Below are positions 9,801 to 53,023 of a DNA stretch of 64,000 nucleotides, piece after piece (within the stretch, counting starts at the first letter, position 1; each line of letters opens with the position of its first letter). The notes below the pieces were generated by a model. The model searched no databases, was not told the DNA's origin, and was given only the letters and a program-made list of their open reading frames with translations. The stretch spans positions 62,001 to 126,000 of the forward strand of contig LSRY02000016.1 of the NCBI GenBank assembly GCA_001643675.2, given 5' to 3'. Origin of the DNA: Monocercomonoides exilis PA203. Taxonomy: Eukaryota > Protista > Preaxostyla. The translations under genes were made by a program, and so were the position numbers.

Positions 9801-12800
9801 TCATCATCTCAGCCCCACTTCCGCTTTTTCCCTTGGAAGAAACAAATAAACTTTCTGCTTCTCCTTTTGCTGCATCAGATGATTCGAGTGTTCAAACGTC
9901 GAATGAATCAAATGTTCTCAATCAAAAACTTGTTTCTCATTCTCGCATTCAAATTCCATTGCGGACAATATCTACCTCATCGTCTTTTCCATCTTTCACA
10001 CCATCAATTTCTTCTGCTTCAGCCCCAAGCACAGCCCAGCCTGTTCTGTCGTATTCAGATGGATGCTGCATCATGTCAGTCGCTCTCACTCCGCTCACAT
10101 CTCATCTCTTTCGCGTGGCATCTGAAGCGTTGTTTGGCACTGCATTCTATTTGTTCCATCAGTCAGCCAGAACAATGATTCTCCCTTTTCCAACTGCTGT
10201 TTCTGTCTCGTGGTGCTTGGTGTTGGTGAAGGCTATTCTCGATTGGATGCCCCTGTCTCTGAAGAGCGTTCCCCTTCCGTCTGAAATTCCTTCCTTTTTC
10301 AGTTCTGCACAGGTCCTTTTTGATGACTCGGTTGACCAAAAGATAAAAGATCTTATGAAAGAAATCATCTCAACGTTGCAAATAGCTCCTCCCACAAAAC
10401 ATCACAAGAAATCAAAGAATGCCACTGGGAAAACAGTCAATACGATTGCAAGCCCTTCAATCAGTCGGTCTCCAACTGCATCTTCAATCGACATTGATGC
10501 ACTTTACGACTCGCTGTATAGAAGGCCTTCATCTGCGTCTCTTTCATCTTGTTGCACGCAATCCACGCTTTCAACTCTTACAACGAATGCCATGGGTGAT
10601 TTTCTTGATGACGATCGAGACGAATGCAGCAGCGGAAGAGAAACAGATGGAGACAGCTATGCAAGCTCTGGGGGAGATGATTTCTCAGCTGACAGCAATT
10701 CAGGGACTGGTGAGTCATCTACAGTGTGCTTCGAGAAAGTGTCATTTTTGAGCAATGAAGAGAGCTTAACGAGAAACAGCACAGAATTAAAGAGTTTTCA
10801 AAAAGAGAAAGCAAAACACTCCAAAAGGAGGAGGAGGGGCTTAAAGCAATCCAGTAAAATGTCGCTGTTTCTGCAGATTCGCCCCAAAATAAGCGCAATT
10901 TCTGCTGAATCAACAGCGTCTTATCACGAACTGCGCCGCGTTGTGACAAAGAAGTCTCAAATTGGCGATGGATGGTTTCTTCCAATGTCTGTCATTGCCA
11001 ATCGCCGGCAGCTGAAGAAGATGATGATGGAAGACACAGACGGAACAGAATTCTCACAAGTGCCAGCTGTCCAGCAGCCACTACACATCCAACTTATGAA
11101 ATCAGAATCCGCTCCATTTTCGTTGAAGGCGATGGAGCAGCTCCGAATGCACACGATCCTTCACACAGACTCTTTTGGAATTGAGTTTCTGTTTGGCTCT
11201 CTGTTCGTTCTTTTGGATGCTCTCGTTCAGGTTCAGCTGAACACAGCTCTGACGAAACAAGCTGAAACTGAAGCACAAAACGAAGATGATGAAAGTCCTT
11301 TGAAGGATTGCGGGATAATTCGTGAAGAGACTGAGCAAGAACAAGTCGCACTTTCTGTTGAATCAACTGCCAAATCTTTATCTCTTCAAAGAACGAAGGT
11401 AGATTTCGATAAGAATGATTCGCTGAGGAATTCTCAATCCTCAGAATCACGAAATTCCATTGGCAAAGGGTCTGTTCCTACAAACGTTCAGCAAAAATCG
11501 AAAAATATGTATGAATCGAATGCTTGTTCAACTTCTTCTTCTCCTCCTCCTTCACTTTCTCCTTCTCCTTCTTCTCCTCTGAAAAAGAGGAAAGGCATTT
11601 TCTCTTCGAAGGAAGAGAACACCGCAAAGGATTCGTATGTTGAGAATCTTGGCTTGTTCCTCGCTTCTCTTCTTTCTTCTCCCTTTTTCTCGATGTTTTC
11701 CATCGCATTTCGTTCCATGCTGATCTATCCTCTGGCTGCCCAGAGCGGACTTCTCTTCATAAATTCGTTTTTCAGACTCTTTCGCATTTGGCTGCGGTGC
11801 TTTTCGCTGAAAGTGCCAAAAACACTTTCCATTCCTTTTCTGCAGCAGAAAGAGGAGCAAGAAAATAGCACAAATATTTCTCCAGCAGCAAGCGCAAGCA
11901 CATTTGCAGTGAAGCAGGCTGCGCAATCATCCACGCCAAATTATATTCAGAACAGAAAGCCGTTGTATCAGCCTCAATCAACAGCATCTTTATCTTTAAA
12001 GACTGTCCAGCACTCTTCGTTGAAGAAGGAAGACTCCAAACTAAAAATGCAACCACATACCCAGCTAAGTAAAAGCAGCATTCCTGTATCGTCATCTGCC
12101 ATCAAAAGCAGCTTGCAAACAAGAAATACTGCAAAAGCAAGTGGCCTTCCACAAATCCGGTTGTTGCCATCAACTCGTCTTTCTCAAGCGACGAGCACGC
12201 CTAAAGCAGCCTCGCTTTCTATTTCTCATCGCTCTGAGGCTGACAACAGGCACCCTCGCCTTTCTCAAATGCCTTCGTCACAGTTAAAGAATAAGCAAGA
12301 TTCCGCAGACACGAATGTCGAAGAAGATTCATCAGATGATATTTCATTCAGTGAAGGCCCAATTGAAAGCGAAACAGGAACAGAAACAGAAAACGAGCAG
12401 TATTCAAGCAGAACAGCCGGCTTGGCAAAGAAGCTGAAGAAGCATTTTGTTCAACGTGCAAATAAGATCGATGCTTTTGATGAGCAAAGAAAAGAAAGAG
12501 AAGTTTGTTGTGAATTGTTGCCATTTTCGTTGACGGCAATCGATTTGTCCGATTCTTCTCTTCCAATTCCTCCTCTTCAACGAACATTCCGTCTTGTTGA
12601 ATTGCTTTCTTCTTCTCCGTTGTGCAAGCCGTCACTTCTTCAAGCATCTGACTCCGAAATCTTTCAGAGCCAAGATAAACATCCGCTTTCGCCATTTTCT
12701 TCGACTTCAATTGATTGCTGTGTGGATGCCTCTTCTTCTTCTTCTTCTTCTTCTTCGCGTTCTGCTGTTCGTGTCACTCCCATTTCGTTGTATCTTCTTC

Positions 12801-13153
12801 TGCCTTCTTTGTTCTCCTACAATGTCCTGCTAAGTCGTGCGCATCCTCTCTTCTTTTTGTGGGATTCCATATGTGCAACTGTCATGCTCCATCCTTCATT
12901 GACGCCGCTTGCCTCTAGCGCACTCACTCAATTGCAACTGTGTCTCAAATCATTCAGAATAATTATGAGAGGAGACAAACAGGAAAAAGCGCAAGAAAAG
13001 CTTGAAAGAAAAGCCGAAAAAGAAAGAAAACTCGAAGCACAACGCGAAAAAGAGCGGAAATCTGTACTAAATGAATATAAAAAGAAAGCCATTGAGAGAA
13101 AAAGAAGAATGAAAGCATTTGAAGAAAGGCAAAAACAGATTAACAAATTGTAG
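6850..13153 (+). CDS. Large (~2100 aa) Ser-rich hypothetical protein with C-terminal coiled coil; 5' end uncertain
   Basis: 6.3-kb uninterrupted ORF; probable acceptor tttttcag ending at 6849; no recognisable domain. Confidence 0.7.
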
Positions 13154-13481: not shown

Positions 13482-15489
13482 ATGAGTGAAACGGATATTT
13501 CAACAAAACCTTCCAAACCGAAGGTTCATTTATTGAAACTGTTAGCTGCTGGATGTGCCGGATCTTCTCCAACTATTATGATGGCAACCGTAATGACAGT
13601 GTTACAACCTCTTTTGATAAGTATATCAATTATTTCATTTTTCAATTTATTTACGAAGAATTAATCGCATATATATTTGATGATACTGTTGTTCAAAAGG
13701 ACTTGGTGTTTCAAAATGGGCCAGCCCAATAATACAACTGATGGCCCCAATCATTGGTATTACTCAGCCGTTTATTGGATCAAAAAGTGACAAATGCAAA
13801 AGTAAATGGGGAAAAAGAAAACCGTTTCTTTTATTCGGTTTCATTTGTGCTCTTTTGTGTTTTGCGTTTTTTATAATGATCGATGAAAATGGTTTGAGTT
13901 GAAATTAAGAAAATAAATTCATTAGTTCATTACTAACTTTCAAATCAGTTTTTGGAGACGGAAATGCTGCGATAGCAATGGCAATAGTGGGCTTTTTTAT
14001 GTGTACTTTATCGATGAATTTCATGATGGGACCAGGAAGGACAATCGTTTTTGATCTTGCTGGTGACGGGCAGCAATTTGCGGGAAATTTGATGATGATG
14101 GTGTTAACTGGAGTGTCAACGCTTGCAGGACTTGGATTTATGGCGTTTACAAAAAGACCATTTATTTTTTCTGCTGTGTTCTGTTCGCTTCTTTGTTTGC
14201 CAACGTTTCTTTTTGTGAAAGAGCCTCCACTTGCAAAAGAGACAACTGCAAGCAAAGGATCAGAGTCTGCACACAAAAAGAAAGATGGAACCTTCAAAGA
14301 GATGAAAAAGGGATTGTGCTTGATTATTAAGAATCGGCAAATGCTTATGATTATAATTTTTTCGTTCTTTGAGTTGATGTCATTGATGTGTTTTTCTTCG
14401 TTTTTCTCATTGTTTATGACGTCTGCCATCTACCGTTCAAACGACCCTGGACTGACGCCAGAAGAGTCAAAGATTCGATATGATAAAGGGATTCAAATGA
14501 CTTCATTTTCGAAGATGGCGTCAAATCTGATGATGACCCTCTTCTCTGCAATTGCAGCGCCTATCATCATGCTGCTGGGGATGCGTCTGTCGTTCATTGT
14601 GACCTGCGTCTGCTCCACTGCAGCGGTGTTTGCGCTTGTGTTTGTGTCTCCGATGGACACGTCTCTCGTCTGGCTGGCGTTCCTCGCAAACATCCTGTCC
14701 TCAGTCAACCTGGCGATGATTATGTCTGTTCCTCCAGTGGTGATCGCAGCAGAGTGCCCGCAAGACCAGCTCGGGATGTATATGGGCCTGTTTGCGCTGT
14801 TTGCAATGGGCGGGCAGATGCTGGCAAGTCTCATCCCGGTTGGCATTAACAGTAACATCGGGCTCTATTCAGGCGGGAGGCATTACCTGCAGTGGGACTT
14901 CTTGTTTTCCGCAATCTGCGGGGTGTGCGGGATAATCGTCATCCCGTTTCTGAAGGAGGTGAACATCCGATCGAAGAACAGGAAGCTGCCAGGGAAAGAG
15001 AAGCAAGGCAAGAAAGATGTGAGCAGCAAAGAGCAGGAAGCCGGAAAGGGAGACGAGAGTGAGAGCAGCTCCGGCGAGGAAGTTACGCCGCTGCTGGCTG
15101 ATGGCGGATACCAGCGTCTGGGCGGAGACTCTTCGGCAGGCGCTTCGCTGGTAGACTCGCCCACAATGAAGAACCTCATCAACACAGCTTCTGCGACCTC
15201 GGCCTCTGCGATGACGGCAGCCTCGTCAGCCACACTGTCTCCGATACCGATGGGAGCAACGCCGACTTACAGCTCGTTTGAGACGACGGGGCAGACACCT
15301 TCGCACCCAGTCAGAAATGACTATTACGAAGTGTCGCCGAAGCTGACACCGTATTCGTCCTCAGCGAACCAGGGCAATCCTCCTTATGCTCTTGCTTCTT
15401 CTGAGGCTGGATATCGAATGCCAAGCGGAGGAATCAACGATGAGGGCTTTTTGTCACAGCCTCTTTTGAACTCTTTGGATACAAATTAG
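13482..15489 (+). CDS. MFS sugar transporter, sucrose/H+ symporter (SUC/SUT)-SLC45 family; exons 13482-13620, 13700-13891, 13949-15489
   Basis: Splicing two GT-AG introns gives an in-frame protein with the family motif QPFIGSKSDKCKSKWGKRKPF, plus GPGRTIVFDL, GLYMG-like (GMYMG) and about 12 hydrophobic helices. Confidence 0.85.
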
Positions 15490-27850: not shown

Positions 27851-28566
27851 GAATCACGATTATTCGGTTGAGTCTAATCATACAAAAGAGCAAGGCCACT
27901 GACGGATAAAATGCTTGTCAAGATAGAAAAAAAAGAAGTATAGGCTTTTTCAAATTCTATTTGCTCCGTTCTGCTTTTGTCATTTTGATGCAAACAAAAT
28001 AAAAAAGCATGCCCCAGGACGTATGAAAAGGCATCCTCCAAATAACAATCACGATTGCATGCCCGTAGGTGTAATTCCGTCTTCTCCAAAAAAAATTCTA
28101 TTTGCAGGAATGTGAGTGCAATTCAAATTATCAAATGTAGAAACTGAAAAAAATACATCCAAAAACAAACTTTGAAAAACAATTTTCTTTAATTATTACG
28201 CATGTTTGTAATGAACAGAGTAACAACAGTTCCCAGGATTTTTGTGGGAAATATGAGAAAGGGGCATTTGTTTTTCAAACAAATCTTGTTTGCCATCATT
28301 CAAAATAATGATTTTTTCGTGTAAATAACTTATTTCCTCATTTCAGCCAATGGCCATCAGCCAATTTATTCTATGACCAAAAGGCTGTTCACAAAAAACA
28401 ACAAAACGAAATAAAAAGATATGAATCAAACAATTGTGGGTTGTTTTCTGATCGATCTGATCATGCAGCCATATTAACGAGTCTGATCTGCCGGTTTTTT
28501 TGAATCGACCGCAAACGCTGTTTCTGAATCCAACCGACGTGTCAGCGCTGCAGGGGCATAGAAGCA

Positions 28567-31332
28567 ATGAGTTTTCAACGAGAACACGAAAAAGAAGTGA
28601 TTGACAAAGCGAAATCCGATCCAACTGCCATGGATAAAGATGGAAGGACAGAGGCGATGAACTGGATCATGAAAAAGAAAACAGAGCCTCCAGCGCACAT
28701 GCGGCACGATATAACGCTTGGGGGCAAAGACGGGTGGACGATGGCGATGCACTGGATTCAATATGTACAAACAGAACCACCGCTGTGGATGAGGCACGAC
28801 AACACGCTGGGCAGCCGCAGCGGAGCAACAATGGCCATGCTGTGGATAGGGAGCGTGAAAAAAGAGCCGCCAGAGTGGATGCGGCACAGCACCACGCGAT
28901 GCGACGCGATGGGATGGACGATGGCCATGCACTGGATTCGGTTTGTACAGACGGAGCCGCCGGAGTGGATGCGGCATGGCACAACACTTCAAGACAAGAA
29001 CAACAGGACGATGGGGATGCACTGGATGGAGTTTGTGCAGACGGAGCCACCGGCGTGGATGAGGCATGACAACACGCTTGGGGATGAAGACGGGAGAACA
29101 ATGGGGATGAAGTGGATCATAGAGAAGAAGACAAAGCCACCAAAATGGATGAGGCACGACGCTGCACTTGGGGACAGCAATGGGACCACGATGGCCATGT
29201 ACTGGATCAGCTGCGTGAAGACAGAGCCGCCAGAGTGGATGAGGCATGAAGCCACGCTTGAGAACAAGAAAGGATGGACAATGGCTGTGTTCTGGGTTGC
29301 AAGCGTGAAAAAAGAGCTGCCGTTGTGGATGAGGCACAACGCCGCGCGTTGGGACGGAACAAAAAGGACACTGGCCATGCATTGGATTCAGTTTGTGCAA
29401 ACAGATCCGCCAGAATGGATGAGGCACGAAGCTGGACTTTGCGACAACGATGGATGGACGATGGCCATGCACTGGATAAGATATGTTAAAACAGAGCCGC
29501 CGTTGTGGATGAGGCACGACATCACACTTTGCGACAAAAATGGGTGGACAATGCCCATGCTTTGGAAAATATCTATTGAAGCTGAACCGCCAAAGTGGAT
29601 GACTTATGACAATACAGTTGGTGATGAAGACGGGTTGACTATGGCGATGAACTGGATTATTGATAAAAAAACTGAGCCTCCACTGTGGATGAGGCATGAA
29701 AAAACGCTTTGCAATAAAGACGGATGGACAATGGCCATGATATGGATTCAAGAAGTCCAAACAGAGCCACCAGTGTGGATGAGACATGACATCACACTTG
29801 GCGATAATGACGGATGGACGATGGCCATGATATGGATTCAGTTTGTTCGAACAGAACCACCAGAATGGATGAGGCATGACATTTCACTTGGCAATAAAGA
29901 CGGATGGACAATGGCGATGAACTGGATTATCGATAAGAAAGCAGAACCACCGATGTGGATGAGACATGATGAAACACTTAAATCTGAGAAGGGAAATACA
30001 ATGGCAATGCTGTGGATTCAGTTTGCCAAGGCAGAACCACCAGAGTGGATGAGGCATGAAAAAACACTTGCGGATGAGGACGGATTCACAATGGCGATGA
30101 ACTGGATTGCTGAAAAGAAAACAGAACCGCCAGAATGGATGAGGCATGAAAAAACGCTTTGCAATAAAGACGGATGGACAATGGCCATGCTGTGGATTCA
30201 AGAAGTCCAAACAGAGCCACCACCGTGGATGAGACATGACATCACACTTGGCAATAAAGACGGAGATACAATGGCCATGATATGGATTGCAAATGTTAAG
30301 ACAGAACCATCAGAATGGATGAGACACGATGCAGCGCTTAAAGATAACAATGGAAGTACAATGGCGATGACGTGGATTCAGTTTGTCAAGACAGAGCCAC
30401 CAGAGTGGATGAGACATGACAATACACTTGTTGATAAGGATGGATGGACAATGGCGATGATATGGATTCAGTCTGTGCAAAAAGAGCTACCAGAATGGAT
30501 GATGCATGAAAAAACGCTTTGCAATAAAGATGGATGGACAATGGCGATGATGTGGATTGCAAATGTGAAGACAGAACCTCCAGAATGGATGAGACATGAT
30601 ATCACACTTCGAACTGAGAAAGGAAATACAATGGCGATGATATGGATTGAGAATTTGAAGAAAGAGCCACCAGAATGGATGAGGCATGACAATACACTTG
30701 GAAATAAAGGCGGATGGACAATGGCCATGATATGGATTCAAGAAGTCCAAACAGAGCCACCAGTGTGGATGAGACATGACATCACACTTGGCGATAATGA
30801 CGGATGGACGATGGCCATGATATGGATTCAGTTTGTTCGAACAGAACCACCAGAATGGATGAGGCATGACATTTCACTTGGCAATAAAGACGAAGTAACA
30901 ATGGCGATGATGTGGATTGCAAATGTGAAGACAGAACCTCCAGAATGGATGAGACATGATATCACACTTCGAACTGAGAAAGGAAATACAATGGCGATGA
31001 TATGGATTGAGAATTTGAAGAAAGAGCCACCAGAATGGATGAGGCATGACAATACACTTGGAAATAAAGACGGATGGACAATGGCCATGATATGGATTCA
31101 AGAAGTCCAAACAGAGCCACCAGTGTGGATGAGACATGACATCACACTTGGCGATAATGACGGATGGACGATGGCCATGATATGGATTCAGTTTGTTCGA
31201 ACAGAACCACCAGAATGGATGAGGCATGACATTTCACTTGGCAATAAAGACGAAGTAACAATGGCGATGATGTGGATTGCAAATGTGAAGACAGAACCAC
31301 CAGAGTGGATGAAGACTGATAATTCTGCGTAA
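28567..31332 (+). CDS. Intronless 921-aa protein of 30 tandem 30-aa repeats (consensus DGWTMAMxWIxxVxTEPPEWMRHDxTLxxx); ankyrin-like hairpin plus first helix
   Basis: Intact ORF: 24-aa leader, 29 full units and a 27-aa last unit; no signal peptide or TM helix. Confidence 0.9.
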   Translation: MSFQREHEKEVIDKAKSDPTAMDKDGRTEAMNWIMKKKTEPPAHMRHDITLGGKDGWTMAMHWIQYVQTEPPLWMRHDNTLGSRSGATMAMLWIGSVKKEPPEWMRHSTTRCDAMGWTMAMHWIRFVQTEPPEWMRHGTTLQDKNNRTMGMHWMEFVQTEPPAWMRHDNTLGDEDGRTMGMKWIIEKKTKPPKWMRHDAALGDSNGTTMAMYWISCVKTEPPEWMRHEATLENKKGWTMAVFWVASVKKELPLWMRHNAARWDGTKRTLAMHWIQFVQTDPPEWMRHEAGLCDNDGWTMAMHWIRYVKTEPPLWMRHDITLCDKNGWTMPMLWKISIEAEPPKWMTYDNTVGDEDGLTMAMNWIIDKKTEPPLWMRHEKTLCNKDGWTMAMIWIQEVQTEPPVWMRHDITLGDNDGWTMAMIWIQFVRTEPPEWMRHDISLGNKDGWTMAMNWIIDKKAEPPMWMRHDETLKSEKGNTMAMLWIQFAKAEPPEWMRHEKTLADEDGFTMAMNWIAEKKTEPPEWMRHEKTLCNKDGWTMAMLWIQEVQTEPPPWMRHDITLGNKDGDTMAMIWIANVKTEPSEWMRHDAALKDNNGSTMAMTWIQFVKTEPPEWMRHDNTLVDKDGWTMAMIWIQSVQKELPEWMMHEKTLCNKDGWTMAMMWIANVKTEPPEWMRHDITLRTEKGNTMAMIWIENLKKEPPEWMRHDNTLGNKGGWTMAMIWIQEVQTEPPVWMRHDITLGDNDGWTMAMIWIQFVRTEPPEWMRHDISLGNKDEVTMAMMWIANVKTEPPEWMRHDITLRTEKGNTMAMIWIENLKKEPPEWMRHDNTLGNKDGWTMAMIWIQEVQTEPPVWMRHDITLGDNDGWTMAMIWIQFVRTEPPEWMRHDISLGNKDEVTMAMMWIANVKTEPPEWMKTDNSA
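28639..31329 (+). repeat. 90-bp coding tandem array (30 units) with a 360-bp higher-order duplication (30541-30900 / 30901-31260)
   Basis: atggc(c/g)atg...tggat...cc(a/g)gagtggatgaggca recurs every 90 bp with no indels. Confidence 0.95.
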
Positions 31333-31511
31333 GTGTTTGTTTCATTTGCATTGAAAATATTTTTTTTTTCGATGCCCCGAATAAACGAACAGATTAGCAA
31401 GCATCCAATAAAGGTTATTCCACAGCCTATCGAAATGCAAGGCTTTTCTTTCTTGCTTTTTTCTCCTTCTTTCTTTCTTTGAAGGCATTTCACTATTTTA
31501 TAAAAAATCTG

Positions 31512-32916
31512 GGCAAATTCTAAATATAACGGAAATTCATAAATCGGTGTTTTATTAAGTTTTTCAAGTTTGAAAAGTGTTATGTGTTAATTGGTGTCAG
31601 AATAACTTAATATTATTTTGAAATATCAGAAGGCAACATGAAAATATTCCGTTTAATTGTTTATTGTGAACAATTAATTATCTTCATATTCTGAAGCATC
31701 CATTCCATCCTCAGCCCCTGATTCATCATCCTCTATTTCACTTTCATCATGAACGCCAAGAATGTCATCTGCATCTGGAATTTCTTCGTCTATTTCTTCG
31801 ATTTCTTTTTGATCAGAAATAATAATGGGCTGATTTTCAGGCTGTAATTTTATTAATTCAAAAAATAGATCTTCGAAATTAATGTTTAAATTACGTTGAA
31901 CAAGCCACATTGATAAGCAATCAGCAATAAATGTTTTTCTGACGCCATGGTGTGGGAAAAAACCCCTTAAATGATTCCAGAGACCTTCCACAGTATTCGT
32001 GCACGCCTTTGTCATAGGATCGACAAAGTTTCTCTTGTGACAAACAGTCAAGTGTGTGTATCCACATTCTCCGAGGCAAGAATAACTTTTCCATTCATCG
32101 CTGAAAATGGTTGTCCCTGGGAGAATCCATTTTTTTAAAATCGGGATTAATGTTTCTTTAGAACGATCGGGTCCTATCATTACGAAATTTCTTCCTGCGC
32201 CTCCACCTTCTTTTCTTTATACTACACCGAATATCCATAAAAGATCCTTTTTTCTTACTCTCGCATGTTTTCTCCTCCTCCAAACTGCCTCATCGATTTC
32301 TACCACTTTTCCAAGCCCTCCAATTTTCTCCATCGATTGGTTCCAAATCCTTGTGCAAACAACTCTTATGACGCTTTTCCAATATCCAATTGTGAAGTTA
32401 GACACATCTGTCAACATATTAATATGCTTTGTTGCCAATCCAATCCAGCTGCATAAAATAACAATCATTATTTTGTGAAATGGCAATTTGCTTTTACTGA
32501 ATACTGTTCCGTGCAAAAATGATCGTTTTAATCTGCAAGATGAGCAATGGAAATATCGAAAATTTATTCGTTCGCTGTATATTTTCATATCTTTCCTGCA
32601 TTTTGAGCATTTTTTCGGTTGATTCGAAAAAGCTTTTTCAAAAAACCACTTCCAGGCTTTATCAGCATCATGAAATATATTGGACAATTCAGCAATAGAA
32701 ATTTTTTTACTCTATTGCTTCAGGAAATTGTATCGCAAGAAAGATCATAACCCATTGACATGTGAAAAACTATCATTTCAAAAATTAATGTATATGAATA
32801 TCAAAAAAATAAATTTTTTCAACGAAAAACAATTTCATAAACAACCAATGTTGACTTAGTTGTATTTTAAAGCATTAACAATCAAAATAAAATTTCCGCT
32901 ATATTAACAATATGCC
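31512..32916 (-). mobile_element. Full-length Merlin (IS1016/IS1595-like) DNA transposon, 1405 bp
   Basis: TIRs ggcaaattctaaatataacggaaatt and (revcomp) ggcatattgttaatatagcggaaatt (22/26); perfect 8-bp TSD AAAATCTG at 31504-31511 and 32917-32924; internal ISXO2-type transposase. Confidence 0.92.
31674..32687 (-). pseudogene. Merlin/ISXO2-like DDE transposase with an in-frame TAA at 32217-32219
   Basis: CxxC..CxxC zinc ribbon, IGGLGKVVEIDE, WIFGVV*R, GTTIFSDEWKSY, HLTVCH, TNTVEGLW; the two ORF-track pieces share one frame. Confidence 0.9.
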
Positions 32917-40973: not shown

Positions 40974-43156
40974 ATGCAATATGACACCATAATTCAAGGG
41001 CTTAATGACATTCTAAGTGCTGCTCCTATATTTAAATTCAAACAGTTGAAGAACGAATGCGAGGAAATTCGCGGTTTTCATTCATTATTTCATTATTGAC
41101 TATTTACGTGTTTTTAACTTTATTTATTCAAGATCAAATTCTTTCAAAGAAGCCAAAAACCTGGTATGCTGCATAATAGAGTTTTCTTGAGATAATACTG
41201 AGCTTTTTAAACTTATTGAAGTTCACGTTCTCTGTTTGCTCCGATTCTTAATGGAATCGAAACAGGACATCAAAAGGTCACTATTGCTTCTTTAGGATGT
41301 GCACAGGTTAGAAAATTTTATTTTTATTAATTATTAACTCCAATAATGATGAAAATTGAAGAAATGGATTTCTGCAAATTTTATTGTTGGGTCATCTTCA
41401 ACTCATGGAAAAGATGAGGAAAGAAACCTAATAGATGTGCTTGTTGGATTGACAGAAAAATGTTCAAAGCTTCATTCCGATGGGATTCCATTTGCCTGTG
41501 CAACAGTGTGAATTTGCTGAGATTCATATATTGAAGATTATTTTTTTATGTTTGTTTTTTTTTTATAAAAAGCTCATTGTTACCCTTCTTTCTTCAGAAT
41601 GTCAGATACATGGAGATGTTCTATCCAGATGCATACTTTGCTACGTTAACGTGCATGTTAATCTTACAAAAAGAGAACAAATTGAAGGATCTCTTCGAGC
41701 AATTAGTCGTGTCTGCTGCTTGGAAATTGATAGATCCCTTGTTTCTGCTGCTGCAGAATATCATGCGCGATTAAGCAAAGAGAAGACAAGACGAACAGAG
41801 GAAAACAAAAACGAGTCTCAAAATGAGAAACCGCAACCTTTAGACACAAAAGAAAAAGAAGAAGGCAAAGAGTGGAGCAGTATTCCAACACAGCACTTCG
41901 AAGAAGCACAAAGCATAAAGTGTGAAGCTGATGGTATCGAAGGGAAATTAAAGAACGAGACAAAGCAATCCGCAACTCCTGATTCGCACAGCAAGAGCGA
42001 AGGAGCATCTCAAAAAGAGTTATCAGTCGAAAAGAAGCCTGCCCAGTCAGTTTTTGCTTCGTCTTCTGTGCTGTCGCCGTCTGTTGTCGAGTGGACAGGC
42101 TTCCGCGATGCAGTGTCTCTGATCACTTCTCTGTGCGATGGGCTTTCTGACTCATCTTCTGCGCTCTCTGCAGCTGCCGGCGGAGCACCGTCTGCGACAT
42201 TCTCCACCTCCACCAGCTACTCCACCTCTGCCCCGTACACAGACCCTTCCCTGAAGCGCAAGATTGTCGTATTCACTGCGCTGGCTGCTGTCTTCACGTC
42301 CTCAGAGCGCTGCAGCTTCATCCTCGACTCCTCAAAAATCCCCTTTTCGCCGCTGCCGCATCTGGCAGAAGGGCGGGTGATGGATGCAGTGATCGAGAAC
42401 ACAGGCGTCCCACACCCAGTCGTGCTCAGCCACGTCTTCTCCATCGCTGCAAAGATCCTCGTCTACAGCACAACCATCGCAGGCGCTGCTTCCACATCGC
42501 CTGCTGCACGCTCTGCTTCGAGCTTTCTTTCTCCTCCACCGGCAGATGATGTGGTGAACTCCTCATTCATTCATCCCTCGCTCTACGTCGATTGGCTGGA
42601 GACAGCTGCACACAAACAAGATATCACACTTTGTCATTCATCTTCATCATCGTCATCTTCTTCTTCCTCCTCCTCATCTTCCTCTGCATCAACTGCACTT
42701 ATTCGAGCAGACTCATCCAATCCCCTCTTTTTCGTGCCCACGGCGTGTCCTGCTCTTCCCTTTGCCCTCTCGTTCGGGTCGCTCTTTGTGGTGGTCGAAG
42801 ATCTGCTGTCGTCTCCCTCTGCTGCGCTGGACGTGGTGAAGTCCTCCTTCGTCACCCTCTTCGCCCAGCTCTGGTTCCGCGGCGATGTCCTCGCTGCTCT
42901 CTTCCGCGCCTTCGACGCAGAGTTCGGAGAGCAGACACACTTCGAGCGGCTCCTCGTGCTGCTCTGCCGATGCGCCAGCACCGCCTTCTCGCCTTCCACG
43001 TCGGCCATTTCTTCTTCCTCCTCCTCGGCTGCAGGGCAAGGGAAGGAGAAGGAGGTTGTCGTTGCGACACTCCCTGGCATCCCTACCTCACTCAACTTCT
43101 CCCCAACACCTCCTCCTGGCAATGCACATACGTCTGCACTAAATCCACAATTGTCT

Positions 43157-43187
<31 letters not shown>

Positions 43188-44701
43188 TTCCTTCTGCTGC
43201 TTCTGCTTCACATTCAGAAACAACTGATTCATCATCATCCTCACCACCATCACCATCATCTTCCTCTTCCTCTTCCACCTCTTCACCATCATCCAATGTG
43301 CCTCCTCGTCTGAACGAGGCTGAGGCTGTTGCTGTGTCTGCAGCTGATCTGCCGAGTGTCTCTCTCTCTGCTGTCTGTCTGGCTGTCCAGGCAACAGCAC
43401 AGTTCTGCGAGAGATTTGCAGTAGATGGATGGCGCATGTATGAGAAGGAGAGGAGCAGGAAAGAAGAGAGAGAGAGAGAGGACGATGAGAAGTCGCAGGC
43501 AGAAGTGCTGCCCACTCCGGCTGCTGGACAGACACAGCATCAGAATGGAATGCTCGCTGGCTCTTCATCTGAGCTGACTCTACAGCACACACGCAATCCT
43601 TCATCATCTGGCATTATTGGTTCATCATCATCATCGTCGTCTTCTTCTTCTTCTTCAATTTCATCTTCTGCCTCAGCTGCCAATGCCTCCGCAGCCTCAA
43701 AGCTGCTGACGACGTCTGCAGCTGTGGACGATCTGATGGAGAAGAAGAAGCTGACCGACCGGTTCATCATCCTCTTCAACATGAAGCCGAAGAAGGGCAT
43801 CCAGTTTGCTCTGAAGCATCACCTCTGCTCCTCCACCGAGCAGATGCAGCCAGAGGAGAACGCGCCTTCCATCGCAGGTAACGTGCAGCTCACGCCGCAG
43901 CTTGCGCCGTCCGTGGCGCGCTTCCTGTTTGACACGGCAGGCATTTCACGGATGCAGCTGGGGGACTACATGGGACAGAACGACCCGTTCAACCAGGAGG
44001 TGCTGAGGGAGTATGTGAAGTGCTACTCCTTCGAGAACATGGTGGTGGACGATGCGATGCGCAAGTTCCTCACCACGTTCCATCTGCCGGGGGAATCGCA
44101 GCAGATCTACCGGGTGCTCGAAGTGTTTGCGGCAGAGTATGTTCTGCAGAACCCAGACGAGTTTCCTGATGCTGACTCGTGCTTCATGATCGCATACCAG
44201 TCGCTGATGCTGCATTCGCTCGCACACCAGAAGAAAGTGCAGGAGGAGAACAAAAAAGGGTCAAGCAGCTCGTCGTCGATGCCGGAGTATGGCGGGATCA
44301 CGAAGCAGGTGTTTATCAACCAAGGGCAAGGGATGGGGAAGAGCGACGAGTTTCTGGGGGAGCTGTACGACAGGATACTGGCGAATGAGATCAAAGTGGT
44401 GGATGACGATGACGAGAGGAGGAGGCTGGCGATTGAGGAGGAGGAGAAGAGGATGGAGGAGAAGTGGAATGGGAGGAAAGCGGTGGAGAGGAAGAGGAGG
44501 GAGAGGGAAGAGGAGGAGCGGAGGATGAGGGCGAGGGTGATGGCAGAAAGGAGCAGAGATCAGAGGAGGAGAGAGAGGGAGCTGAGAGAGAAGCAGAAGA
44601 GAGAGGCACTCGCAAAGGAAAAAGAGGAGAAAGCAGGCGAAGTGTCGTTGGTGTCTCATTCATCTGCCTCTTCTGATGAAGCAACTTCATCATCATCTTC
44701 T

Positions 44702-44736
<35 letters not shown>

Positions 44737-47700
44737 ATCATCCTCCTCTTCCTCTCTCAACACCTTCGAAGCTGCCACACCCTGCCCGCTCTTCACCCCG
44801 TCCCATGCGCGCTCCATGCTCTCAGCAGCCTTCTGGCCAGCGCTGTCGTGTCTGATCCCTGCCCTCGACGCCACCCGCGACAACAGCACAGCCTCTGCCC
44901 TCTTGTCCTCCCTCGCTGCCCTCATCCGCGCTGTGTCCTTGCACAAGATGGACACAGAGAGAGACGCCCTCATCACTGCCCTCTGCAACTTCATCGGCTT
45001 TGCCTCGCCTGCGGCGTCTGACAGGCATCTGCAGTGGAAGCACACACAGGCAATCATCGTGCTCTTCAAGCTCTCTCGCCCCTTCTGCTCACTCACCATG
45101 AAGGCAGTCTATGACCCTTTCTTCGACACAAAGAGAGAAATGTGGCTGAGGAAGAAGCTGGCGAAGGGAAATGCCGGAGGAACTAAAAAACCTTTAGTGT
45201 CTACAACGCCTCCTCCATTTGCTGCATCTTCTTCATCTTCTTCTTCTTCCTCTTCCTCTTCCTCCTCATCTCATTCCTCCTCCTTCCCTGAGTCCACCTC
45301 GTTTGTGCCGACTGCCACGCGCCCTGCATATCTTGTGGACGAAGGCGGAGTGGGAGACTTTCTGCGGGTGCAGAACTGGAGGTGTGTCCTCCTTGTTGTG
45401 CTGCATCTGATTGCGCTGCATGAGCTGAAGGGGCAGCTCAGAGAAGACGACATCCACAACGCCTTCGCTGCCCTCTCACAGCCTGACGGAAGAGCAGAGG
45501 GCGATGGATCTGCAAGCAGTGTGTTGTTATTTATTAATTGAAAATTTGTCATTTTCTTTTAATATTCATATTTATTTATTTATTTATTTTGTTAATCACC
45601 TTTTTCCTTTCCTCACCAGTTGTCCGATCATCCCAATCATATTCCCAGTCCTCCTCCTTCCCTTCTTCTTCCTCCTCCTCCTCCAAAGCGCCTTCCAAAT
45701 CCCCCGTCAAGCCACCCCCAATCCTCAAAAGCCAACGCCAATCGAATGCCCTTCCACTCGTCCCCACAAACATCACTGTTGGGCGTGCCCTCATCCTCCG
45801 CCCCCTCTTCTCCCGCATCGATGCACCCCCCGTCCCCATCAGCCACGTCCACATTAATCCGCAGTTCAGCTTCGCCTCTTTCGTTCCTTTCTGCAAAGCT
45901 AACCTTGTCCCACTCATCCTCGCTGGTGACTCCGTCTTCGACGTTTCTGCCCCTTCTGCTCAGCTGGTTGATCCGTCTGTCACCACACAGGACTCAGTGG
46001 CTGAGGCATCTTCCTACTTCCTTTCTTACGTCCCCGTCCCTTCCTCCCGCTGCGCTGCCCACAATGCTGTCTTCCTATTCAACACACTCTCCCTCCCCTT
46101 CGACTTCCTCACCTCCTGCTTCGCCTTCTCTGCCCGTCTGGACTCTCTTTCTTACCTACACATGCTGTTTGCGCTGTGTGAGATGACCATTTTAGCACCT
46201 TCCTCTTCTCATCACACCCCTCTCCGTGTGACTGCCCTGCAGCGTCTGCAGGAGCTGCTCGCGCACAACTCCCGCCGCTCTCCTGCTGTGTGTGCAGCTG
46301 CTGCTGTGGTGTGTGCGTGGTTCCTGGAGAGGAACGTGAGGGACAGCAACAACCTGAACATGGCGATGCTTGCTGTCGTGACTGAGAGGCAGCTGGCGAC
46401 TGCTGCGCTGAAGAAGGCAGTTGGATTGGAAGGGAAGCAGAGAGGGCTGTGGGGCGGGTGGCAGGTGAAGGACGTGGTGGTTGATGGCAACGAAAGAAGA
46501 ATTAGCGACTTCTGCGGGGTTGTTCAGGAGGAGAAAGGAGAAGGCGCATCGGGTGAGAAGAATTCTGATGAGGCAGAAGCAACAACGGCAGCAGCAGCAC
46601 AACCGCTGCCTTCCGGCTTTGTCTCTCTCTCCACCCCAATCCATTCCCCCAAGCACTCTCCCTCTCCTTCTCTCTGCTCTTCTCCTCTTTCTGCGTCTTC
46701 CTTCTCCCTCCAGCCAATTACCTCTTCTCCCTCCTCTTCCTCTTCCCAATGGCCCCTTTCTTCTCTCCCTGATCTGCTCCAGCAGCAGCGTGCATACAAC
46801 CAGCATCTCCTCCAAAATGTGCCTTTCCCTCCCCTCCATCTTCTGTGCATTGATTACCAGCAGCTCCTCCTCCTCCCTCTCCTCTCCTTCGTCTCCGTCG
46901 GCTCCTGGTTCCCTCTCGCCGTCAACGACAGCTACTCTTCCTCCACTCTGCAGCTCGTCCTCTCCAAGTCCCACAGCAGGTCTCCTTCTCAGCCTCCTCT
47001 CACCTCTCAGCAGCTGCCTCAGACACAGCCCCAGCCCCACTGGCAGCAGACAGGCACGTTCCTTCAACCAGCAAAGGCGCCTCTGGCACTGACAGACGCT
47101 GCACAAAGAGAGCAGTTTATCAGCGAGATACAGAGAGCAATGATGGACACGCTGGCACAGATGCTGGAGCCCATCTATACATCTCAGCAGCGCCCTCTCT
47201 CTGCAAGCGATGTCAGAACATTGGCATTGAATGCTCCGAACACTTCTGCCAACAACAAGCAGAGTGGAGTGGATGCACAACCGACTTCTCCTTTGTCTCC
47301 TTCTAATTCTTCATCTTCATTATCTGCTTCATCATCTTCTTCTTCTTCTTCATCTCCTTCCTCTTCCTCTTCTCCTTCCTTCTCCCCTCCTCCTCTCCGC
47401 TCTATCGGCGCCCAGCTGAAGTCTGGCTGGTGTGTCGTGTTTGCTGTCTGCTCTGTTGTCAGCCAGAATCCAAAGATGAACCACAAAGTGTATCTCTTCC
47501 TGAACGACATTCTCCACCTGCCCCTTTCGCTGCAGACAGAAGAGTCACTCGAAGACGACGATGCTCTGCTGATGGAGCTGATGGAGGAGGAGGCAAGGAG
47601 AGAGGCAGAAAGAGAACAGAGAGAAGAGGAAGGCACAGGAGATGAGACTAAAAATAGCGATACCGACGCTCCAGCGCCTTTGAGCGATGAAGTCGAATCG

Positions 47701-50700
47701 AATTCATCAGCATCTGCTTCTTCTTCTACTTCTCCATCTCATCCTCAACAATCATCAACACCGTCATCATCATCTGGCACCTCCTCTGCACGCAGTACCC
47801 CTCGTGCCTCTTCTTCTTCTTCTTCTTCTTCCAATCAATCAGCCACCCTCCGCTTTCTTCCTTATTCCCCTCTCTCTCCTTCCCCCAACATCACCGCCAG
47901 CACTCCCCAGCCTGCTCCCCTGCCTCCACTTGCTCTCTCTGACATTCTTCCCTTTGCCTTCACTGACCTCCTCGCTGCCCTGGCAGACGTGGCTCTTCAC
48001 ACAGACATGCAGAGGGTGGCTACTGAATGCATCGCAGGCATCGAGCATCTCTGCCGCATTTTGGGCTCAGACGCTGCAGAGAGAGAGGAAGAGAAGGCGA
48101 GGCAGAAGAAGAAGCTGCAGGAGATGCTGATGAAAGACAGAGAGAGAGAGAGAGAGAATGTTCGTATTCAGACAAAAGACGATGATGAGGCATCACGTTC
48201 AGGCACCCCCACCTCCCACCGATCAACAGACTCCCCCCTGCCTCTGCCTCTCCCCTCTCCTTCTCCCACCCCCTCCTTCACTCCATCTCCATTCTCTTCC
48301 TCTTCTTCTCTCTCTTCCTTTGCGCCTCCTCCCTCTCCCTTCAGCAACATGAAGCCCTTCAGCCACACCCACTTCTTTGCCGTGTGGCTGCCCTGCATCC
48401 GCATTCTTGCTGCACTCACAATGGCAGACCCCCTCTCAGCCACAACTGTCTCCTCTCTCTCCTCTCCTCTCCCTTCTTCCCACCCTCCCTCTCGTCCGCC
48501 TCCTTCTCATCCACACTCCAATGCTGCTCAGCCTAATGCATCAACATCATCCAGTTCTCAATCATCCTCTTCCAATCAGCAGCAGCAGCAGCAGATGAAT
48601 CAAGAGAAAGGCACAGCCGCTCTCTCACAAGGCATCGACATCCGGATGCCTCTGCCAGACGTGGCGATTGCAGCGCAACATGCACTGGAGCGTCTGCTGC
48701 ATGACGATGGAGACAGGTTGGACGGGGCAGAGTGGGCAGTGCTGTGGAGGGAGGTGCTGATGCCGATCTCAGAGACAATCAGAGATGCCATTGTGGCGGA
48801 AGACGGGTGGTGGAAGGAGAAGAGGCAGATGGTGGAGATTGAAGAAGAAGAGGAAGAAGAGGAAGAAGAAGAAGAAGAGGAGGAGGAGGAAGAGGAAGAG
48901 GAAGCGAAAGAAGTGAGTGTGGATTTGAAAGAAGAAAAGGATAAAACAAAAGAAAATGTCAAAAAAGACAGTAAAGTTGCTGAAGATAAGAAGGAGAAAG
49001 AAACAAAAGCACCAGCTGTAGACATCTACAGTCAAGGATGTGGATCATCTACGTTTGTCAGCCATCTGTCTGAACTTGAAGATGAAGAAGCTGAAAACAA
49101 AGAAGGAGAAGAAGAAACAAAAGAAGAGAAAGAGAAAGAGAAAGAAGCCACAAATGAAGAGAATGCCAAGCCTGTCAGCAACACTGTGAGTAGCAGCATT
49201 TACGAATCAGGATGTGGGTCAAGCACATTTGTGAGCCATCTTTCAGAGCTTGAAGATGAAGTTGCTGAACAGAAAGAAGAGAAGGAAGGGGAAGGGAAAG
49301 AAGGAGAGAAAGAAGGAGAAGAGAAAGAAGAAGAAAAGAAGAGTGAAGAAGCAGACAACAAAAAGGAAGCAACGTCACAGCAACAGACAGAAGTGTATGA
49401 CAAATACAGCCAGGGCTGTGGATCATCAACATTTGTTAGCCAACTTTCTGAGCTGAGCGAAGAAGAAGAACAGCAACAGAAAGAGAAAGAGAAAGAGCAA
49501 AAAACAGAAGAAGATTCAGTTAAAACATCATTCGACTCTTCATCATCAGCCTCTTCTTCTTCAGCAGACAAATACAGTGCAGGATGTGGTTCATCAGAAT
49601 TTGTGAGTCAGCTGTCTGAAGTGGAAGAGAACAGCACAATTGAAACAAGTGTTGCTGCCAGTGAGAAACCAGCTGAAGAGAAACAGACACCAAAAAGCGA
49701 ACAGAACAAGACAGAAACAAAAGAAGAAGCCAAAAAAGATGAAAAAGACAAAAAAGAAGAAAAAACTGCAATTCCAACAAAACGTGTGAAGAAAGTGAAG
49801 AAAGAGAAAGCCAAAAAACCGAAGCAGAGGAAAGAGGCAGAAATAGAGACGCTGACCATTTGGGAGCAGAAGAGGCAGTGGGACAAGCTGAGAAGAGAGC
49901 GAATGTGGCAGTTTATGGAGAAGATGACAGCGGATGCAGACAGACACTTCTCAGGCAGATTCAAAGAAGGAGATGGAACATGTGCAGGCAATGAACAAGG
50001 ATGCTGTTTGTCTCAGGAAGAAGGAAAGAAGCAGAAGGAGCCATCGAGAATACGGTGGATGTGTGGAAGAAGACTGCTGGAGCCTGTCGATGCCTCTATC
50101 TCATACAGCGATGAACAGAAACACCATGCTTTCGCATCACCATCATCATCTTCTTCTTCATCTTCACAAAAGAGCAGTCAACACAATGACTCAAACAATT
50201 CTCATATTCCTTCCACAGTCTGTGAGTGCACTACAATCTGTGTAGAGATCCACCACAGACAGCAGCTGCGTCGCCAATGGAAAGTGGAGGCGACCCGCTG
50301 GCTGGAGAAGCTGATCAAGTTGTGTGCAAAGTTCGATCGGTCGATGAGCAGAGGAGGAGAATGGCGATGGATTGAGCTGGAGAGCACACAGCCTGTTGAG
50401 TCTGCTGCTGCTGCTGCAGGAGAAGGCAACGGCAATGGACAAGGCGTGTCTGTGAATGCAATGTCGAAGAGTGCGCAGGCAGAGAGTGTGCAGATGAAGG
50501 ACATGGAGGAGATGAGAAGAAGGAAGGAGATGCTGTTTGGGAGGGACGACGGGATTGTGCTGGTCTTCCCAGACAAAACAGGGTTTGTGGAGTGTGGGCA
50601 GATCCAGATGAATTCTGACAAGACATCTGATGAGGCAGCTGAGTCAGCTTCGTCTCAATCACTGAAGAAGCTGATGACTCCGCCATATTCGCATCTTCCT

Positions 50701-52981
50701 CCACCCACACGCTGGTCGCCCCATCGTCTGTCTTCGTCTGCCATTGCCTCCTCTTCTCTTCCATCTTCTCTTCCATCTTCTCTTGCTCAGCCAAATGCCC
50801 TGCTGAATGGAGCAGTCATCAGAGACGAGCGGCAGACAGAGAATTCAACATCGAATGCAGCTGAGTCTGTCACAATAGACGAGCACGGTGTTGTCTCCTC
50901 CTCTTCCTTCACTCCTTTCTTCTTCGACACTCTCTTTGAGCTCGCAGTGGATATAGCGCTGCACAACAACCCATTCACTGCCCTCACCCACTCCCCCTCT
51001 CCTCCTGTGCTGAACATGATAAAAGACTTCGACCGCTTCAAGATGCGCGACGCAGAGTCCCGCCGGCTGGCGACGCTGCCGTTCTCTCTCTTCTTCTCGC
51101 ACGAGCTGACCGCGCTGCTGAACGGGCAGATGTGGCTGAGGATTGTGCGTGTGTGTGAGTTCTTGCTGGCAGCATCGATGCCAAGTGAGATGTGCCCAGC
51201 AGGACAGAGGCACCTGACGAAGTGGATGGAGGAGGAGGCAATGCTGAGGAGAGAGGAGAGAGAGGAGATGAGAATGAAGATAAAAGAGAGGAAGAAGAAG
51301 ATAAGACTGATGAAGCGGAGAGCAGATAAAGAGCAAGGGAAGCATTTGGGTGAAGAAGGAGTGGAGAATGCTTCAAAGGCAGAAATTGAGAGAGAAGAGG
51401 CAGAGCTGGCAAAGGACATGGAGGCATTGCAAATGCTGATAACCAACCACCACAAGCCTCTGTGGCTGTCTCTTGTTGATCCGTCTGCACCCACCAACAT
51501 CTTTGCGTTGAGTCTTGCGCTGTGCATAGCACCTACTGAGGAGATGCTGATGATGCCCTCACGCCCTGGCCAGCGCCCTCTCCCGATGACACTCCTCTTC
51601 CACTCCATCAGCCTGCGCGTACACTTCTTCGCAGAAGTCGCACGAGGAGTGGATCGCCTGCTGCATCCGCCTCCTTCTCCGCTCCGCCTGCTGTCTGCTG
51701 AATGCGCCACGATGCTTCTTCATTCTCTTTCCTCTGTTGTCTCGTTCGTGTTCTCCATCAGCTTCGACCTCCCACTCAGGTCTTTCCTGATGAACACAGT
51801 CTTCTCTCAGATACCTCATCTGTTTCTCTTCTTAAACGATGCAGGCATTATGCTGTGGAGCAGGCTGTCTACAATTGTCGATGAGGCACTCGGAATTGAG
51901 CAGTTCAATGTGCAAGAAAAGAAGAAGAATAAGAAGAAGAACAAGAAGAATAAGAGCAAGAAAAATAAAGCTCAGAAGGAAGAACAAGAACCATCATCTT
52001 CTTCTTCCACAGCATCACCCACAACCCAACCAAACCCCAATATTTCTCTTCCTGTCTCCTCCTCTTCCTCTGCCTCTGCCTCACCAGAATGCACCTTGTC
52101 ATTCGCAGATGGCGTCGCAGCTGAGCGGCGTCTGCTGCACAGCCTGCTGTTTGTGCTGAGTGCAACAGGCACTCTTGTCTCTGTCTGTGGACGCATCGAA
52201 GGCTGCAGCGAGGAGAGGCTGCTGGCAGCAGAAGGGAGCAAGATGGGGATGGTGGAAGAGAAGGGAAGAGGAGAAGAGAAGGAGAAGAAGACGGATGAGG
52301 ACAAGAAGAAGGAGTCAGAGGCGATTGTTGGACATTCTCTGGTGCTGGTGAACACGCTGGCTGTGCCTGCGCCTCCGAAGCGGCGAGCAAAAGGAGAAAG
52401 AAGAGCGAAGAATTCTCACAATGCGAAGACTCCATTGACGGCAGGAGATTTGTTTGAGAGTGAAGGAGCAAGCGTGCCAGGGGTGTTGGAGTTCCAAGGG
52501 GAGAGGATGCTGAGGATGTTGAGTGCATACACCTTCTGCTCTGCTTGTGCTGATGACTCTGATGAATCTAATAGAACAAATGAATCAAATGGAACAGATA
52601 AATCTGAAGGGAATGGCTATGCCAGTGGAACTGTCTGTGCAGATGCCACACCTTCAGATGCTGTGTGTGGGGTGATGATGGCTCTTCCATCGCTCTTTGC
52701 ACGACGCAAGAGCAATTCTAATGAATGTGCAGACAATGAGGAAATCTCATCATCATCATCATCTTCTTCTTCTTCCTCTTCAAAGAAGCATTCAATTAAG
52801 CTCTCTTCATTTGTCACTGTTCCTTCTCTCCCTCAAACAATCACTTTTGACACTCTTTCTGCTTTGGAGGTTGACGTAGGAGCAGTTGCATCGATCAATG
52901 AAATGCACCTTTTGGAGCCATTTGTCATCACTGCCTTCAACTTCTTGTCTCATTTGAGAAGAGATGTGGTATGTTATCTTA

Positions 52982-53023
<42 letters not shown>

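Follow-up and report, generated by a model that had tools for sequence, protein, structure and literature searches.

A predicted ankyrin-type solenoid of 30 shortened repeats in Monocercomonoides exilis and the large gene family to which it belongs

We analysed a 64,000-nucleotide stretch of the Monocercomonoides exilis PA203 genome (positions 62,001 to 126,000 of the forward strand of contig LSRY02000016.1, GenBank assembly GCA_001643675.2; hereafter the window) with regard to an intact gene on its plus strand, which runs from ATG to TAA at 28567..31332 with zero internal stops and codes for a protein of 921 aa. This protein opens with a hydrophilic head of 24 aa, behind which come 30 ankyrin-like units of 30 aa in tandem, and we consider it likely, on the strength of structure prediction, that it forms a cytosolic ankyrin-type alpha-solenoid of shortened repeats, whose most likely role is that of a scaffold or adaptor, made of repeats only, that binds other proteins. 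Such a scaffold is favoured by the repeat-only and acidic nature of the protein, the lack of a signal peptide and of transmembrane (TM) segments, a surface rich in aromatic residues, Arg and His, and the existence of RING-bearing relatives; the cytosolic location, the binding of proteins and the face that would do so are inferred. The family to which the gene belongs is a diverged variant of the ankyrin repeat (ANK) on a known fold and not a new kind of recognition system.

An earlier note, made from the sequence alone, had described the protein as a scaffold of 30 repeats of 30 aa, and our parse of the open reading frame (ORF) agrees with this. From residue 25 onward there are 30 consecutive units, each exactly 30 aa and without an indel, in which T4 and W9 (numbered within the unit) are found in 30/30 units and P17-P18 and W20-M21-R22-H23 are nearly invariant; the list of di-residues at positions 11-12 given in that note was reproduced item for item. 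TRF recovered a 90-nt period (28.7 copies, 70% matches) together with a 360-nt super-repeat of four units (4.6 copies, 83% matches). The N-terminal 24 residues, MSFQREHEKEVIDKAKSDPTAMDK (28567..28638, plus strand), are common to the closest paralogues on contigs C68 and C19, and residues 1-13 of this head are modelled as disordered by AlphaFold2. Units 1-11 (28639..29628, plus strand) are old and diverged, with a best within-gene nucleotide identity of 69-78%. The first of them, DGRTEAMNWIMKKKTEPPAHMRH, is of a type with which the repeats of many examined paralogues also begin, probably an N-terminal cap.

Units 12-21 (29629..30528, plus strand) are of intermediate divergence and include, in units 13-14, the source or a copy of the QE-QF pair (named after the residues at 11-12) that recurs later in the gene. 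Units 22-30 (30529..31332, plus strand) are recent duplications of a four-unit (360-nt) block AN-EN-QE-QF, as judged by nucleotide identity between units. Here unit 23 pairs with 27, 24 with 28 (and with 13), and 25 with 29 (and with 14), all identical or nearly so in nucleotides: the identity is 100% among units 13-14, 24-25 and 28-29 and likewise between units 23 and 27, and the last 12 units have a mean identity of 0.88 at a lag of four. Recent copying thus accounts for about a third of the 30 units, which cannot be counted as independent samples. The last unit ends in WMKTDNSA, a C-terminal ending shared with several paralogues. The whole protein has a pI of 5.64 and a net charge of -27, with 10.5% Met and 8.1% Trp, and most paralogues are likewise acidic or neutral. 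We found no TM segment or signal peptide in it (Kyte-Doolittle means over 19 residues peak at 0.7, and the N-terminus is hydrophilic), and no RING or other catalytic domain either in it or in the 30 paralogues examined; the Pfam scan and the hydropathy profile thus concur with the earlier statement that catalytic, signal and TM domains are lacking.

The fold was modelled with AlphaFold2 on residues 1-324 (the head plus 10 units) of the 921-aa chain, using an alignment of 75 rows that comprised N-terminal and in-register internal windows of paralogues, and the resulting model has a mean pLDDT of 94.2 and a pTM of 0.85. In each unit of this model DSSP assigns a 9-residue helix to positions 5-13, beginning immediately past T4, and a 3-residue helix to positions 19-21, with the remainder as loop or hairpin. 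When the model was compared by VIA-align with 48,161 representative chains, all of the 50 best matches were ANK arrays, led by 5y4f_A (AnkB R13-24; Z 18.4, rmsd 4.7, 302 of 324 residues aligned). Residues 13-324 of the model lie on residues 447-791 of this chain, such that about 10.4 units correspond to 10.4 ANK repeats, one unit per repeat; the ANK domain of MIB1 was also matched (VIA-align Z 15.6). Foldseek searches of the PDB reached E 1e-9 with the ANK domains of ankyrin-1, AnkB, espin and latrotoxin and with DARPins, the ten nearest models in the ESM Atlas are 10/10 from Ank families (TM 0.65-0.76), and language-model neighbours, at 0.81 a weak lead, are likewise Ank clusters. Neither Sel1, TPR, HEAT nor beta-solenoid structures are found in the VIA-align top 50 or in the Foldseek and Atlas lists.

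The predicted model therefore shows what defines the Ankyrin superfamily structurally, namely stacked helix-loop-helix-beta-hairpin units that match solved arrays, with the peculiarity that helix 2 is only one turn long. It departs from the canonical ANK unit, with its ~33 residues and two helices of about 8-10 residues, in having 30 residues and a helix 2 of 3. The modelling and Foldseek comparison of units that had been proposed earlier thus returned an ankyrin array. The suggestion that the second ankyrin helix is altered held up, as helix 2 has shrunk to one turn at E19-W20-M21, whereas the further suggestion of a distinct solenoid did not: all structure searches lead to ankyrin arrays, and sequence intermediates pass the Ank_2 cut-off.

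These intermediates came from sequence searches of very large protein collections. A word-indexed search of 5.8 billion proteins returned a single relative, P0001, and an exhaustive profile search of 1.84 billion representatives recovered 265 clusters at E<=1e-3, with 150 at E<=1e-10. The family profile reaches canonical ANK proteins, such as P0086 (E 8e-21) and P0122 (E 4e-15), each of which scores several hundred bits to Pfam Ank_2. Further, P0005 (29.8 bits; profile E 2e-62) and P0024 (30.3 bits; profile E 1e-34) lie above the Ank_2 gathering score of 27.3, and by eye both mix ANK-like and family-like units within one chain. On P0086 the family profile keeps one register constant over at least eight consecutive repeats, in which D24-I-T-L-x28-D29-K30-x1-G2-x3-T4-M-A-M-x8-W-I-x11-x12 falls on ANK D-I-N-x-x-D-x-x-G-x-T-x-L-M-x-A-x-x-x and the three extra residues of ANK are always inserted past H23 of the family, at the end of helix 2. 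The signature G-x-T of ANK is thus present as G2-x3-T4, with the Thr capping helix 1, and the P-L-H part is replaced by M-A-M.

The same alignment places the variable positions. In the DARPin module, the numbering of which, as set out by Binz et al. in 2003, reportedly reads D1 x2 x3 G4 x5 T6 ... x13 x14 ... x33, the family positions 28, 30, 1, 3, 11 and 12 would be equivalent to 33, 2, 3, 5, 13 and 14, going by the P0086 alignment and this numbering. The ankyrin/DARPin register previously proposed for these six positions is confirmed repeat for repeat by the profile alignment to P0086. On a helical wheel of helix 1 the conserved positions 5, 6, 9, 10 and 13 (with 7 at 200 degrees) span 0-200 degrees, and the variable positions 8, 11 and 12 lie at 240-340 degrees. 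By inference, the variable residues would make up the canonical ANK binding surface, consisting of the hairpin tip (28/30/1/3) and one face of helix 1 (8/11/12).

Taken as an ankyrin derivative, each unit would retain the ANK beta-hairpin tip (positions 24-3, with G2-x3-T4 as the ANK G-x-T) and the inner helix 1 (positions 5-13, TMAMxWIxx). The outer helix 2 would have been cut to a Pro-Pro linker and the one-turn E19-W20-M21, packed by the invariant Trp, Met, Arg and His, with three residues deleted at the helix-2/GA turn; the family would diversify through unit duplication, shuffling and a near-neutral drift of surface positions. The canonical ANK (PF00023, PF12796) shares with it the L-shaped unit, the G-x-T N-cap and the one-to-one stacking into a curved solenoid, and is likewise most variable at the hairpin tip and the end of helix 1. 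However, its unit has 33 residues as against 30, its helix 2 (about 9-10 residues) is replaced in the family by a T-E-P-P linker plus the one-turn helix E-W-M, and its TPLHxAA and LLxxGA motifs contrast with the Trp/Met-rich core of the family, TMAMxWI and WMRH. DARPins, whose structures are among the top fold matches, are randomised at positions that coincide with the naturally variable ones of the family; but they have 2-3 internal repeats with dedicated caps and are selected in vitro, whereas the window gene has 30 units, the family shows no signal of selection for diversity, and its position 8 varies too.

To delineate the family we searched the M. exilis genome (82,301,135 bases, 101 contigs), the Oxford Nanopore (ONT) assembly of strain PA203 having been described as 101 contigs of about 82.3 Mbp (PMC8767320). 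When the genome was searched in six frames with the window protein, 135 matches came back, distributed over at least 47 distinct open frames 600-1,661 aa in length; by this search contig C80 carries at least 22 family genes. A DNA pattern for P-P-x-W-M-R-H occurs 1,584 times genome-wide, as opposed to 0 times for the reversed control. The 31 ORFs that were fetched have ~22 such motifs per gene, from which the genome count of ~1,600 motifs extrapolates to roughly 70 genes or more; overall, the family comprises about 70-100 genes and ~1,600 units, with 17-52 units per paralogue. In the same genome canonical Pfam Ank_2 has just 34 matches, which are spread over about 20 open frames with lengths of 2,000-7,400 aa in several cases. 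The trimmed 30-residue form far outnumbers classical ANK in the M. exilis genome. A full-text search found no publication on the 30-residue family in the literature collection covered.

Position-wise entropies were computed from 709-718 units of 30 paralogous loci. The 30-residue spacing is kept throughout the family (718 spacings of exactly 30 residues, 15 of 31). Entropy exceeds 3 bits at positions 1, 3, 8, 11, 12 and 28 and is below 1 bit at G2, T4, M5, A6, M7, W9, I10, P17, P18 and W20-H23; G2 is found in 608/718 units and T4 in 718/718. Positions 3, 8 and 12 often carry Trp, Arg, Tyr, Phe or His.

The paralogues also differ in their termini. At least eight of them (L005, L006, L015, L018, L020, L021, L022 and L028) begin with MG(N/S)..., an N-myristoylation-like start that suggests a membrane-tethered subfamily; the window gene begins with MSFQRE and is without an MG start. 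A conserved non-repeat C-terminal tail of ~40 aa, with the motif ...D(A/E)M..(L/I)KE(M/I/S)L(Q/K)KH.(N/G).(S/T)GK(E/K)(I/M)HL..K(I/L)E, is present in L002, L003, L008/L009, L012, L026 and L030, and the window gene is without it. Two of these tailed genes lie on contig C80, at 92147-93679 (plus strand, L009) and 100664-102196 (minus strand, L008), 7 kb apart and inverted. Their scores are identical (E, bits, identity, 859-aa frame) and their products near-identical, which points to a recent inverted duplication.

The coding constraint on the units was gauged by Nei-Gojobori counts of the proportions of synonymous (pS) and nonsynonymous (pN) differences in 118 disjoint nearest-neighbour unit pairs of 85-99.9% nucleotide identity, along with 276 more distant pairs. 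Over the 118 pairs the global pS is 0.203 and pN 0.071. In these pairs pN/pS is 0.00-0.09 at the scaffold positions, 1.22, 1.07, 1.25 and 0.97 at positions 1, 3, 8 and 28, and 0.50 and 0.41 at positions 11 and 12; the 276 more distant pairs give 0.60-0.94 at positions 1, 3, 8, 11, 12 and 28. Collinear comparison of the window gene with its closest paralogue, L023 on contig C68, yields 0.87 at 1/3/8/28, 0.86 at 11/12 and 0.07 at the scaffold, and that with L029 yields 0.76, 0.75 and 0.10, respectively. The scaffold is under strong purifying selection, which argues for real functional proteins in the plus frame, and the variable positions drift at about the neutral rate. Neither the unit pairs nor the collinear comparison with the two closest paralogues revealed positive selection clearly above 1 at the variable positions; the excess of nonsynonymous change for which a check had been suggested is not seen there above the neutral rate. 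We discount an antisense ORF of 467 aa over the repeats (28474..29877, minus strand) as a gene: it results from the periodicity of the sequence, and the constraint seen at the codon level (pN 0.07 vs pS 0.20 overall, near zero at the scaffold) fits the plus frame.

Eight public runs contain the stretch, four of which are recorded as RNA (metatranscriptomic libraries from one study). Contigs of three RNA libraries match without a single difference at 28485-28852, 29101-29715, 29875-30147 and 31269-31509, marking 28485..31509 (unstranded) as the stretch in which exact-match RNA contigs are present, and no introns are found in the covered parts of the gene. The RNA depth is zero in 3/3 libraries over a transposase remnant at 31602-32800, which a DNA run covers throughout; this silent control argues for transcription of the repeat gene rather than carry-over of DNA. 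Over 27948-28469 the RNA depth is zero in two of the three libraries. Expression, which the earlier note had set as a test of its proposal, is thus supported by exact-match contigs from RNA libraries.

Several observations weigh against the assignment as an ankyrin-type binding scaffold. None of the Pfam Ank models (PF00023, PF12796, PF13637, PF13857, PF13606) gives the window protein a score in hmmscan at E<=10. An hhalign comparison of the family alignment with 11 canonical ANK segments of M. exilis is not significant (E 0.25), despite setting D..G.T on D..G.T. The family profile also reaches Sel1 proteins, namely P0067 (E 3e-23), with which it shares the motif G-N-T-D-A-M ... E-P-E-V-A-R-H-W, and P0149 (E 1e-10); summed repeat scores alone are consequently no proof of ANK homology, as unrelated solenoid classes can be linked in this way. 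Moreover, it is by the ANK register and helix periodicity that the variable residues are assigned to one face, and the RNA contigs from the one study attest presence only, without strand, true ends or level. The matched part of P0067 (residues 873-1159) belongs to a bacterial-type protein that combines a trypsin-like peptidase, AAA and Sel1 with a 36-aa unit.

The sole Pfam match of the window protein is to PF22659 YycE-like_C, with 42.9 bits against a cut-off of 27, summed over four short stretches of which the best covers profile positions 26-51 of 55. We reject this glyoxalase/VOC-type (beta-alpha-beta-beta-beta) label as spurious in view of the partial stretches, the helical ANK model and a PDB YycE match with E 0.42 over 25 residues; the match arises from the motif E-x-P-x-W ... 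T-L-x-D-x-D-G-W. Searches of PDB sequences with phmmer and with a profile returned only chance matches (obscurin, titin, YycE; E 0.18-1).

The closest foreign relatives, P0001-P0004, have a 30-aa-type repeat followed by a C-terminal C3HC4/RING-H2 finger, an arrangement which, to judge from the domains recognised, is the layout of a substrate-binding E3 ligase. They resemble in this the ANK-RING E3 ubiquitin ligases of the MIB1 and XB3 types, from which the window protein and the 30 paralogues differ in being without RING. P0001 and P0002 are located on 2-kb contigs of one JGI metagenome. P0005 is encoded on a 10-kb contig beside genes for Rce1, IscU/NifU_N, RPB10 and an EF-hand protein, and these eukaryotic housekeeping neighbours place it in another cellular eukaryote. 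P0055 comes from a 35-78-kb groundwater contig with tightly packed, co-directional, mostly orphan genes that include a deoxynucleoside kinase (dNK), T5orf172 and an adjacent second family member; by its gene content this contig looks like that of a large DNA virus. In the part covered, 21.6 kb of 35 kb, this groundwater metagenome contig (L044) has a GC of 0.32 and 24 co-directional genes, and its adjacent genes at 10001-11593 and 11622-12806 match the family profile with E 8e-34 and 4e-24. A scan of IMG/VR viral contigs with the family profile found no confirmed relative.

Among the other explanations, the one that survives best, though we hold it to be unlikely, is that the family is a natural library of diversified binders, kept varied by diversifying selection in the manner of DARPins or VLRs against changing viral, bacterial or host gut targets, with each unit providing one contact patch. 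It would account for six hypervariable positions per unit in the DARPin register, the prevalence of Trp, Arg, Tyr, Phe and His at 3, 8 and 12, the multitude of about 70-100 genes with 17-52 units each, shuffled units and recent block duplications, and the relatives on a virus-like contig. However, the pN/pS of 0.8-1.25 at the variable positions would look the same if an exposed surface were simply under relaxed constraint, recent pairs give values under 1 (0.4-0.5) for positions 11 and 12, and the same variable register is found in any ANK family, so that the pattern is non-specific. A bolder form of the idea, to which we give a low probability, is that the 70-100 genes constitute a recombination-shuffled repertoire of binders on a minimal 30-residue scaffold, obtained from giant viruses or traded with them, and employed by or against the gut protist in host-virus or host-microbe recognition. 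If this were true, the compact unit with its Trp/Met core would be a new protein-engineering scaffold.

That the proteins are instead mechanical or cytoskeletal elements, with ANK superhelices acting as springs or tethers (of the oxymonad axostyle, the preaxostyle or membranes) and a surface variation of little functional meaning, appears very improbable. Arrays of 17-52 units do resemble the spring-like ankyrin and NOMPC arrays of 24-29 repeats that are among the best structural matches, the N-myristoylation-like MG(N) start of some paralogues could provide a membrane tether, and the near-neutral evolution of the variable positions would be in keeping with such a role. Yet the window gene has neither an MG start nor an anchoring domain, a spring or tether would not need many paralogues with differing surfaces, and the RING-fused relatives point to substrate binding.

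A nucleic-acid reader of the TALE/PPR type had been entertained in the earlier note; this reading, with the di-residue at 11-12 taken to recognise one base, is disfavoured to the point of being highly implausible. Like TALE and PPR proteins the family has fixed-length tandem units with variable residues at fixed positions: the units are strictly modular at 30 aa, the variable di-residue always occupies the same place, and the mutual information between its two positions is high (z 30 over the family units). Unlike them it has another fold, ANK, which usually binds proteins, and an acidic protein (pI 5.64, charge -27, with most paralogues acidic or neutral). The 127 different 11-12 pairs among 632 distinct units, together with four further hypervariable positions (six or more variable positions per unit in all), are incompatible with a small code, and the 11-12 covariation is expected because the units are related by descent. 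Of the covariations with position 8 claimed earlier, the link of N8 with K13 holds family-wide (32% vs 6% background), whereas those of H8 with an aromatic residue at 12 (30% vs 36%) and of M8 with A11 and N12 (12% vs 9% and 25% vs 22%) do not, and their appearance within the window gene is due to copied blocks.

The remaining alternative, that the array is a Sel1/TPR-type or otherwise distinct solenoid and its ANK-like model an artefact of prediction, draws on the reach of the family profile to Sel1 proteins (E 3e-23 and 1e-10, via G-N-T-x-A-M ... E-P-E ... W) and on the failure of the Pfam Ank models to detect the window protein, and can practically be set aside, as no such solenoid appears in the top 50 of the 48,161 chains compared or in what Foldseek and the Atlas returned, a single long helix plus a hairpin makes up each unit rather than two antiparallel long helices, the Sel1 unit has 36 aa rather than 30, and there is no Pfam Sel1 or TPR match.

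As for the genomic surroundings, the ankyrin-type repeat gene is directly followed by the remnant of an IS1595/ISXO2-like DDE transposase (31674-32687, minus strand) in two ORFs, one with a treble-clef zinc finger (32217-32687, minus strand) and the other with DDE_Tnp_IS1595 (31674-32180, minus strand). All window ORFs of at least 500 aa are on the plus strand. Three very long ones are without any Pfam domain (2642-6514, 1,290 aa; 6872-13153, 2,093 aa; 45538-53112, 2,524 aa), and the only recognisable ones among the long ORFs of the window are MFS_1 (13978-15489) and Sec7 (41480-45541). The GC content is 0.55-0.57 in window positions 1-2000 and 42000-48000, as against 0.24-0.45 for most of the window, and positions 1-2000 have a strong AT skew of 0.27.

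Standard annotation leaves this family of about 70-100 genes without a meaningful domain, and the Pfam label that the window protein receives, YycE-like_C, is wrong. Its identity as a 30-residue ankyrin gives a name and a testable function, binding via the hairpin/helix-1 surface, to a large gene family of a model amitochondriate eukaryote. The same naming extends to more than 250 unnamed metagenome protein clusters, some of them RING-fused and some on virus-like contigs. The family further indicates how short an ankyrin unit can become: with a Trp/Met core and one turn left of helix 2, the units are still predicted to stack into a regular solenoid, a point of possible interest to designers of repeat proteins.

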